Part shown: piece by piece, positions 61,730-63,675 of the stretch
How the letters are laid out: each line of letters opens with the position of its first letter
Position numbering within the stretch: position 1 is the stretch's first letter
Assembly: GCF_032191835.1 (NCBI RefSeq)
Contig: NC_083232.1
Location: forward strand, 54,622,001-54,686,000
Length of the DNA: 64,000 bases
From: Heteronotia binoei
Taxonomy: Eukaryota
Reading direction: 5' to 3'
The notes under the pieces: generated by a model
The model's database searches: none
What the model was told of the DNA's origin: nothing
The model's input: the letters and a program-made list of their open reading frames with translations, nothing else
Position numbers and translations under genes: made by a program

Positions 61730-63273
61730 GTTGGGAACAGAAACACTTACACCGTTATCCTTTTGGTTGTATAAGTCACACATATGTCAAAACACATAAT
61801 CACAAAGGACATACTTGTCATGCTGATTTGTCACTTCTAACAGGAAGTGTTGATGTCACATTCTGCCATATTTAATGGGTGCGTCTGGTGGTTCCCTGAA
61901 AAGTGGCAGGAGAATGTTGTGCGGCCCTGAGCCGCCTCGGTGGGGAGGGCGGGATATAAATCGAATAAAATGAAAATGAAATGAAATTTCCAGTCAAGAA
62001 GATTATATAAATACATAGGATAATGCATGTACATGGAAATGTTATACAGTATTATGATCATCTTTCTAAGCCCTCAGCAGAGTCAGAGCATTCATATAGA
62101 TATTTATGATGAATTGGGCAATTCCACAGTGTGTCTATAGTACAACAAAATTGTAGTGGTGTTTATTGCTGTTACTTAAATCCAGAGACAAGAGCAAAGA
62201 ACAGACTTGGCAAGTCATTCTACAAATGTGAAAGAAGTCTCAGGTTTGCAGAAAAATCTGACATCAAAGAATACATTGGGGAATTAAAAAAACCCCCAAA
62301 TAGTAGAAGCAGCATCTGTAGCTTTAAGAAATGAATGCCCACAGTGACCATTGTTGGATAAACATAATAATACTGCTGGGCATCAAGCTTTACTGACAGA
62401 AACGAAAAACCCGAGGAGGCAGGGCCCTTTCCATGGCTGTTCTGGCCTTTGAGGGAAGATTCATCAGGGCCAGACCTGTCAGAAATCACTGGGCAACTTA
62501 CTACTACTTGACTTGCATGACTTACCCAAGGCAGGTTGCTTGCTACTCTTCAGTAGCAGTCACCCCACAAAAGCCAGTGTGGGGTCATTAGAATTTTAGC
62601 CTAGAATCAGAAAAACCCAAGTTCAAATTACCACTCTGCCATGGAAGCTTACTGGGTGACCTGGGCCATTTATATATTCTCATCCTAATCTTCTTCATAG
62701 GGTTGTTGTGAGGACAAAATAAAGCAGAGGAGATTGATGCAAGCTGCTTTGGATTCTCACTGTGGTGAAAGATGGGGTATAAATGAAATATAGTTGAAGA
62801 TGGGGGCTACAGAAAATGTGGGTGGGTGGGAAGGATAGAAGGAAGCAGGGAAAAGTAAGCACTTGGGGGTTTTGAGGAGGAGGGAAGCAGGAAATAGTGT
62901 GGGCAATTGGATGTAGAAGAAAAAGAAGTGCTATCTGCAGGTCCCTACGGGTTCACCAGTATGCAACTGTGTGTGGTTTGGTGGCTGGCACTGTGCAATC
63001 GGCATATTTTTCCTGAATAGAAGAGTGCTGAAAGAGGGAAAGAAAGAGGGTGAAGTGGGGGTGGGGGCGCAGCAGATAAAAGTAGGTTGGCTGGTGAGTG
63101 GGAAGGAGAGAAGGAAGCAGGAAAAGGGGACAGGCCATGGGGGCTTTCAGGAAAGGGAAAGAGGAAATACCAAGGGAGGGGGAATGAAATGCCCTGCACA
63201 AGTCCCTATGATCCCCTGCTTGCCTTTCCCAATGCAATGTAATTCTGGTGGGATAGCTGTGTTCGTCTGTTGT

Positions 63274-63659
63274 ACAAGAACAGTGGAAGCACAATATATG
63301 AAATACAAAAATACAAGATATTGTGCACAAACAAACACTCTTAACTGGTGTATATAAAGTTCTATTATAATGAAATGAACAGCCCACAACAGTGGGCATA
63401 CATTCTACCACAAATTATGCAGTCGAGTTTCCCGCATTTGGGGGAAACTTCGCAGGAGGTTTTCCCAGGGTGAGGCTCATCCATTGCACTCCGGGTGTGC
63501 TGACCCCTGCGATTTCCCCAAATGCGGGAAACTCGACTGCATAATTTGTGGTAGAATGTATGCCCACTGTTGTGGGCTGTTCATTTCATTATAATAGAAC
63601 TTTATATACACCAGTTAAGAGTGTTTGTTTGTGCACAATATCTTGTATTTTTGTATTTT
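63274..63659. mobile_element. 386-bp fold-back insertion of a U1-headed chimeric sequence with a 16-bp TSD
   Basis: TGTGTTCGTCTGTTGT at 63258-63273 and 63660-63675. Arms 63301-63443 and 63516-63658 are perfect reverse complements (143 bp) with a 72-bp spacer. Confidence 0.9.
63451..63554 (+). pseudogene. RNU1: U1 snRNA fragment (about nt 33/40-136), lacking the 5' end and stem-loop 4
   Basis: GGTTTTCCCAGGGTGAGGCTCATCCATTGCACTCCGGGTGTGCTGACCCCTGCGATTTCCCCAAATGCGGGAAACTCGACTGCATAATTTGTGGTAG matches vertebrate U1 SL2, SL3 and the Sm site. A shorter inverted copy lies at 63405-63456. Confidence 0.95.
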
Positions 63660-63675
63660 TGTGTTCGTCTGTTGT

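Follow-up and report, generated by a model that had tools for sequence, protein, structure and literature searches.

A 386-bp unit at positions 63274-63659 of the window, by which we mean the whole 64,000-nucleotide stretch of Heteronotia binoei DNA that was analysed (NCBI RefSeq assembly GCF_032191835.1, contig NC_083232.1, positions 54,622,001 to 54,686,000 of the forward strand), is best read as one recent retro-insertion, without function, that the machinery of a young Penelope-like element (PLE) produced. Its template was a chimera in which U1 snRNA sequence (from nt ≤36 to nt 136) lay directly 5′ of the terminal ~105 nt of the PLE 3′ UTR. We place the probability of this reading at roughly 0.82. 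No function is expected of the product, because the promoter, the U1 5′ end and stem-loop 4 (SL4) are all absent. The unit is a real but ordinary kind of object, one dead chimeric retro-insertion.

Results

Anatomy of the insertion

The 386-bp unit is bracketed by a perfect 16-bp target-site duplication, TGTGTTCGTCTGTTGT, and its components are given in Table 1. Two arms, 63301-63446 and 63513-63658, are 99% complementary and are separated by a spacer of 66 nt. The stretch 63451-63659, which a previous sequence-only reading had singled out as a U1 head fused to a tail, consists of the spacer and the right arm, and is half of a palindrome. The unit ends in TTGTATTT, and an A-run is absent. The shorter arm (left, U1 ~87-136) carries a 27-nt extension at its outer end, which is the stretch between two reverse-transcription start sites, whereas the longer arm (right, U1 36-136) has no extension. 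When either DNA strand is read from the flank, an antisense PLE tail is followed by antisense U1 and then by a sense copy of the other arm. This layout is as expected of two target-primed cDNAs, one from each nicked strand, whose 3′ ends annealed and were mutually filled in.

Table 1. Components of the insertion and their positions in the window
Feature	Positions	Strand	Basis or remark
Target-site duplication, left copy, TGTGTTCGTCTGTTGT	63258..63273	.	Perfect direct repeat with 63660-63675
27-nt PLE tail extension, only at this end	63274..63300	-	Matches the family extension CATATATTGTGC..CTGTTCTT; counterpart of the published 30-40 bp PLE tail (PMC8557442, PMC11167929)
Left arm, terminal 104 nt of PLE 3′ UTR, antisense on + strand	63301..63404	-	100% identity to other copies (L002-L005) and to the right arm
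Left arm, antisense U1 from nt 136 back to ~85-87	63405..63456	-	Alignment to U1 gene
Arm-to-arm joint, imperfect microhomology CG[C/A]AGG(AGG)	63451..63460	.	U1 alignment
Right arm, U1 nt 36-136 (SL1 3′ strand, SL2, SL3, Sm site and 3 more nt), sense	63454..63554	+	101/101 identity to C21 U1 genes
Right arm, terminal 104-105 nt of PLE 3′ UTR, sense	63555..63659	+	Ends at the inner start site without extension
Hairpin GCCCAC-TGTT-GTGGGC	63562..63577	+	In all family copies and in the predicted fold; mirror copy at 63382-63397
Target-site duplication, right copy	63660..63675	.	16 bp

The bases at which the two arms meet (CG[C/A]AGG at 63451-63456) can be read twice, as antisense U1 87-93 and as sense U1 33-38; over 63451-63460 the two readings are antisense U1 85-93 and sense U1 33-42. 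In the alignment, the U1 part of the left arm shows three small insertions (+C, +AG and +T on the U1 sense strand) close to its inner tip. Another U1 variant as the source of the left arm was considered and rejected, since a search of the assembly gave no second occurrence of the variant string, which is unique to this locus. Such insertions are compatible with two syntheses that ended separately and were prone to error at their ends.

Positions 63120-63222 belong to an older interspersed repeat (718 first-look candidates, 78-87% identity). The sequence immediately at the target site is unique, and the left-flank repeat, which ends ~50 nt before the insertion, offered no comparison with a paralogous empty site.

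The U1 portion

The Rfam U1 model (RF00003) matched 63445-63585 with a score of 84.5 bits (E = 1e-20; gathering score 69.5), in an alignment that was forced over the first model positions and over "SL4". When 63451-63554 was aligned with the U1 genes of the same genome on C21, 103 of the 104 positions were identical, the sole mismatch being the junction base at 63453. The alignment confirmed the earlier observation that U1 identity stops 3 nt past the Sm site, AATTTGTGG, at G136 (63554). The U1 head that had been proposed is real as far as nt 36-136 are concerned, but it is not a complete head: the unit lacks nt 1-35, and with them the 5′ splice-site recognition sequence and most of SL1. SL4 is absent as well. 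The Sm site is intact, and a 6-bp G+C-rich hairpin lies 7 nt further on. The hairpin is present as it had been described; it belongs, however, to the invariant sequence of the PLE 3′ UTR and does not stand in for SL4.

The U1 genes of C21 are full length (164 nt) and form two clusters, C21:53274894-53295057 and C21:54646137-54666123 (L036-L044). They have in common a conserved upstream flank, ...GGGCGAAGGAAAGC, a downstream 3′-box-like sequence, GGTGCGAAAAATAGA, and a normal SL4. These genes are apparently functional, and the clusters are the likely source of the captured U1. Elsewhere, U1-like copies with ~95% identity to the U1 part follow one another in tandem at C11:80790846-80824890; there are at least six, and they could represent a variant-U1 array or a duplicated pseudogene. 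Two U1 retropseudogenes, L046 (C13:56451349-56451449) and L045 (C11:20680763-20680862), are cut just past the Sm site, the former ending at U1 nt ~139 and the latter at nt 133. The 5′ end of L046 is complete, and a duplicated target site of ~10-13 bp (GGGTTTCAGCCTC) flanks it. It seems, therefore, that reverse transcription in the H. binoei genome has repeatedly used U1 RNAs ending close to the Sm site as templates.

The tail and its parent element

The tail at 63555-63659, which had previously been regarded as unknown sequence, is the 3′ terminus of a young, high-copy PLE and corresponds to the terminal ~105 nt of its 3′ UTR. The sequence-only reading had taken a match of the tail to a LINE 3′ UTR or an mRNA as the sign of a chimera; the retroelement 3′ end that was found belongs to a PLE. 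The non-U1 tail had also been put at 130 nt or more. It is real, but its length is 104-105 nt (63555-63658/9), as it is cut by the duplication at 63660-63675, and the figure of 130 nt is reached only if the 27-nt extension of the mirror arm (63274-63300) is added.

The 105-nt tail yielded at least 679 first-look candidates in the 2.63-Gb assembly, and all 40 of the 40 candidates scored showed 98-100% identity. Many of the copies occur in inverted pairs, 0.2-2.2 kb apart. At 30 other loci, similarity to the unit was limited to its tail parts and the U1 part was found in none; the other tail copies run upstream into shared PLE sequence, ...TTATTTATACTGTATG|AATGTATGCCCAC. In long copies, a frame of 722-757 aa precedes the tail, with its stop codon ~480-580 nt upstream. 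This frame contains a Pfam reverse transcriptase domain (RVT_1, E = 4e-9, above the Pfam cut-off) and, at its C-terminal end, a GIY-YIG-like domain that scores below threshold (E = 0.017, 15.9 bits) and has the motif GVIYAL...YIG...R..EH. Homologues with E values of 1e-204 to 1e-100, from Anolis, geckos (Paroedura), lacertids (Podarcis) and amphibians, carry PF00078, and some of them (E ≤ 1e-159) have a precomputed PF01541 or are named GIY-YIG endonuclease. The parent protein shares only ~40-45% identity with the closest PLE proteins in the database. A reverse transcriptase followed by a GIY-YIG domain is the defining architecture of PLEs, and we assign the parent element to the PLEs because both are encoded in one ORF. 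An intact 757-aa frame was found in at least 18 copies (6151 first-look candidates). Because of these many intact frames, we consider the family to be young and probably still active.

In tandem PLE copies, the extension continues directly into the 5′ UTR of the next unit, and the start sites are positioned ~45-80 nt upstream of the first ATG. The full-length copies, among them L050:3400-4236 (- strand), show the extension, then the 5′ UTR, and then an ATG-initiated N-terminal ORF. The product of this ORF is lysine-/glutamate-rich and coiled-coil-like; the ORF ends with a TAG stop and is out of frame with the 757-aa reverse transcriptase-endonuclease frame, which starts with ...DLVINLSSHHLSHDERRVLNLGLSF. 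The frame shift looks like a feature of the family, because the 757-aa length recurs in at least 18 copies, and it would correspond to two ORFs, a programmed frameshift or a small intron.

When folded, the PLE 3′ end was no better than shuffled sequences (z = -1.5). The predicted structure includes a 9-bp stem, GCACAATAT/ATATTGTGC, in whose loop the inner start site would be located. A hammerhead motif is usual in the terminal repeats (pseudo-LTRs) of canonical PLE clades, and some clades are without it. No Rfam match to a hammerhead ribozyme at E ≤ 1-5 was obtained in L031, L032, L050 and L052, where minimal PLE hammerheads may escape the models, and the CUGANGA core was not found in L031 or L052.

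Some copies of the element appear at regular or repeated positions. Four identical PLE arms on one strand of C15 (41189928, 41226600, 41263108 and 41299603) are spaced by ~36.5 kb, which suggests a four-unit tandem segmental duplication carrying a PLE insertion, and duplicate copies 279 kb apart are located at C1:151520801/151521474 and C1:151799870/151800543. Sub-threshold Rfam matches to microRNAs were seen within the unit (mir-8927, 63413-63547) and in other PLE loci (mir-885 and mir-4520/4433; L032:4556-4628, L052:3477-3588). The assignments to mir-8927, mir-885 and mir-4520 were rejected, since the scores are below gathering and all lie on palindromic arm junctions. In the H. binoei genome, the PLE palindromes are likely to give rise to false calls of microRNA precursors.

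The insertion pattern of the family

Approximately 20 paired loci were inspected for the anatomy of the insertion, and ~50 insertions of the exact subfamily were surveyed for chimeras. The family inserts as two 5′-truncated copies of the 3′ UTR arranged head to head, so that the outer ends are the 3′ ends of the element. The two arms have unequal truncation points and are joined with an overlap of 0-6 nt, and the target-site duplications measure 10-16 bp. One end of an insertion stops at ...TTGTATTT, and the other extends 27-35 nt further (CATATATTGTGC...CTGTTCTTTTGCA). The unit at 63274-63659 has the standard insertion anatomy of this PLE family.

In all 16 of the 16 independent insertions whose two ends could be read (L067-L086, L031 and the unit in the window), one end and only one carried the extension. 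If the two ends chose their start sites independently, the probability of this outcome would be 0.5^16 = 1.5e-5. The sole apparent case of an extension at both ends, L077, is a tandem junction that enters the 5′ UTR of the next unit. Within the family, it was the shorter arm that carried the extension in 11 cases and the longer arm in 6. The finding of one extension per insertion points to two priming events that are obligately asymmetric, a stricter rule than the "often" of the literature, and it suggests that the two cDNAs begin at two neighbouring start sites of one template complex.

A DNA transposon with long terminal inverted repeats was also considered for the family. This reading was rejected on the grounds that the long copies encode reverse transcriptase and GIY-YIG, and it is countered as well by the variable 5′ truncation of the arms and by the 10-16 bp duplications.

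Uniqueness of the U1/PLE junction

A 27-mer that spans the joint, searched with up to 3 mismatches, occurred twice in the 2.63-Gb assembly, and both occurrences are the arms of the unit. A gapped junction pattern again returned only the two arms, and when patterns were made to exclude the canonical PLE base ahead of the tail, this locus alone was returned from the whole assembly. The same PLE position was examined in 74 canonical arms and 1 arm with a SNP; none of these 75 other arms breaks there. A breakpoint hot spot, at which two independent jumps could have been identical, was rejected given that 0/75 other arms break at this position. Splicing at the joint was rejected as well, since neither side shows GT or AG signals. 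The rarity of the chimera is a rough estimate that derives from ~50 insertions of the family. Public sequencing runs were screened for the locus and none contained it; the best share was 0.18, made up of conserved U1 words only. Among the origins that the sequence-only reading had listed, the one-off template-switch chimera is supported by these searches, in that the junction exists only in the two arms of the unit.

A model for the origin of the chimera

The most likely series of events is the following. The PLE endonuclease would nick the two target strands 16 bp apart, and each 3′-OH would then prime a cDNA on PLE RNA, one at the inner and the other at the outer start site. Priming at two different, adjacent start sites is the mechanism that would explain why an extension is found at exactly one end. 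After ~105 nt, the reverse transcriptase would leave the PLE RNA for a U1 RNA with its 3′ end at G136. The microhomology at this PLE-to-U1 jump is only 1 nt (G). The cDNAs would stop at U1 nt ~36 and ~87, and their 3′ ends would then anneal at CGnAGG and be filled in. Fold-back (self-primed) copying of one cDNA was rejected here, as it is the shorter arm, and not the longer one, that carries the extension.

Both cDNAs must have been copied from the same chimeric template, because the junction is common to both arms and the PLE position is not a truncation hot spot. This template was either one chimeric RNA or a PLE RNA fragment and a U1 molecule held by the first cDNA; in the latter case, the first cDNA would keep the PLE RNA and the U1 RNA together for the second pass. 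With respect to the joint itself, we think it fairly likely that it originated by a template jump during insertion.

The Sm ring would halt 3′ trimming of U1 at G136, leaving Sm-protected 3′ ends. Because the landing point at G136 is where the ring would halt trimming, the position of the jump suggests that the acceptor was a 3′-trimmed U1 ending at G136. The ends of the two U1 retropseudogenes described above, L045 at nt 133 and L046 at nt ~139, may be placed beside this landing point.

Three observations speak against the main reading. The jump enters mature U1 at nt 136 and not at the 3′ end (nt 164), so that the reading needs a putative 3′-trimmed U1 or an internal entry. In addition, a simple switch by one cDNA fits poorly with the finding that two cDNAs, each primed separately, have the same junction; either the same pair of templates must have served twice or a chimeric RNA must already have existed. 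The third point is that the searches of the family gave no hammerhead ribozyme, a motif usual in PLE terminal repeats.

Discussion

The anatomy of the unit resembles that of insertions of the Penelope/Poseidon type. Published PLE insertions consist of inverted, 5′-truncated copies, one end of the insertion bearing a tail of 30-40 bp (PMC8557442), and the PLE of Anolis carolinensis, PAc, cleaves and extends both target strands and begins reverse transcription at two neighbouring internal sites, between which the tail lies (PMC11167929). The features shared with these elements (PMC11167929, PMC8557442) are the head-to-head arrangement of inverted 5′-truncated copies, the extension of 27-35 nt at one end only, the target-site duplications of variable length (10-16 bp) without poly(A), and the location of the start sites inside a longer tandem transcript. 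The unit differs in that the inner part of both arms is U1 snRNA and not PLE. At the level of the family, the hammerhead ribozyme motif was not detected, and the start sites, which are inside the ORF in PAc, lie ~45-80 nt upstream of the first ATG.

Chimeras between retroelements and foreign sequence are known from other systems. In Adineta vaga, PLE terminal repeats frame captured unrelated sequence together with target-site duplications (PMC3846280). The likeness to our unit is that foreign sequence lies between PLE termini within a duplication and was mobilised in trans by PLE enzymes. In the A. vaga cases, however, what lies between the pLTRs, direct or inverted, is non-coding DNA or host genes, whereas here a 100-nt snRNA fragment is joined sharply to only 105 nt of the 3′ end, and in both arms. 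For the snRNA chimeras of LINE-1 (U6/L1), the accepted account is a template switch of the reverse transcriptase during target-primed synthesis (PMC4476161, PMC11838501). As in our unit, an snRNA is fused in the same orientation to a 5′-truncated retroelement 3′ end within one target-site duplication. Unlike the U6/L1 chimeras, the unit was driven by a PLE and not by L1, is without poly(A) and a TT/AAAA-type target, contains U1 entered at nt 136 rather than at the mature 3′ end, and is an inverted duplicate in which the junction is present twice. We would, therefore, view the A. vaga capture as the closest analogue among PLEs and the U6/L1 chimeras made by L1 as the closest in mechanism. A search of the full-text literature, judged by titles, found no report of an snRNA/PLE chimera among the 15 titles listed.

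An alternative to the main reading is that the unit is the 5′-truncated offspring of a chimeric master transcript. According to this hypothesis, a PLE tail was inserted in a U1 gene or pseudogene after nt 136, and the resulting RNA, perhaps transcribed from the U1 promoter and containing the PLE start sites, was retroposed in trans. A pre-existing chimeric RNA is the simplest account of the identical junction in two primed arms. Moreover, PLEs mobilise foreign sequence that is framed by their own terminal repeats (PMC3846280), and there are non-autonomous PLE derivatives that have only the 3′ end in common (PMC8557442). Nevertheless, the 2.63-Gb assembly contains no second locus with the junction, even with 3 mismatches, the U1 clusters on C21 are assembled and have a normal SL4 and 3′ box, and only a single offspring copy exists. 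We think that a master transcript is unlikely. A related possibility, which we rate slightly lower, is that the master locus (a U1 copy driven by the U1 promoter, with a PLE tail after nt 136) is missing from the assembly or is polymorphic; the unit would then be the earliest descendant of an snRNA-headed retroposon that is just arising and is moved by a PLE. As for an artefact of the assembly (a long read that is chimeric or folded back) or a DNA-level palindromic duplication that a simple insertion underwent later, long-read libraries can generate palindromes, but a perfect 16-bp target-site duplication encloses the entire palindrome, and the asymmetric 27-nt extension together with the unequal arms is the exact pattern seen at other loci of the family. 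This makes either event very improbable.

The two remaining hypotheses are those that the sequence-only reading had put forward beside the one-off chimera, and we regard both as refuted, with almost no chance of being correct. One is a squamate family of snRNA-headed SINEs, hitherto undescribed, which would be the counterpart of SINEU in crocodilians, where families of ~1,000-7,700 copies have heads from U1 or U2 genes and heads were added recurrently (PMC4494074). The unit does have U1-derived sequence 5′ of a tail from an autonomous retroelement, as in SINEU (PMC4494074), and a target-site duplication. SINEU families, on the other hand, are multicopy and have a head with the snRNA 5′ end and a LINE-derived tail, whereas the junction described here is single-copy, the U1 5′ end is missing and the tail is that of a PLE; every other copy of the tail continues into the PLE 3′ UTR, and the tail occurs elsewhere only without U1, an outcome that the sequence-only reading had itself named as a refutation. 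The other hypothesis is a 3′-extended variant U1 gene in which a new hairpin replaced SL4 and the RNA could still bind Sm proteins. The intact Sm site and the G+C-rich 6-bp hairpin 7 nt beyond it, which Rfam aligns as SL4, would be compatible with such a gene. However, this hairpin belongs to the PLE 3′ UTR in all copies of the family, and U1 nt 1-35 are lacking. Upstream of the U1 sequence is the mirror arm, not PSE/DSE or the conserved flank of the real genes (GGGCGAAGGAAAGC), and downstream is the PLE tail, with no 3′ box of the GGTGCGAAAAATAGA type. Furthermore, one target-site duplication encloses the whole unit.

The value of the retro-insertion is that of a natural experiment on PLE integration, a process that is still unsettled in the literature. 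The foreign U1 segment serves as a barcode, since one and the same U1/PLE joint is found in both arms. The shared joint, the 27-nt extension that only the shorter arm has and the single extension in 16/16 insertions argue against a simple fold-back of one cDNA. Taken together, the barcode and the extension rule favour two target-primed cDNAs that start at two adjacent sites on one template, and this picture agrees with the in vitro behaviour of the Anolis PLE (PMC11167929). The insertion also means that the reverse transcriptase of a PLE can recruit an abundant nuclear RNA, as that of L1 does with U6, and RNA recruited in this way is raw material from which snRNA-headed SINEs could arise. If the unit were in fact the offspring of a master locus, it would be the first step toward a U1-headed SINE mobilised by a PLE, a kind that is not yet described.
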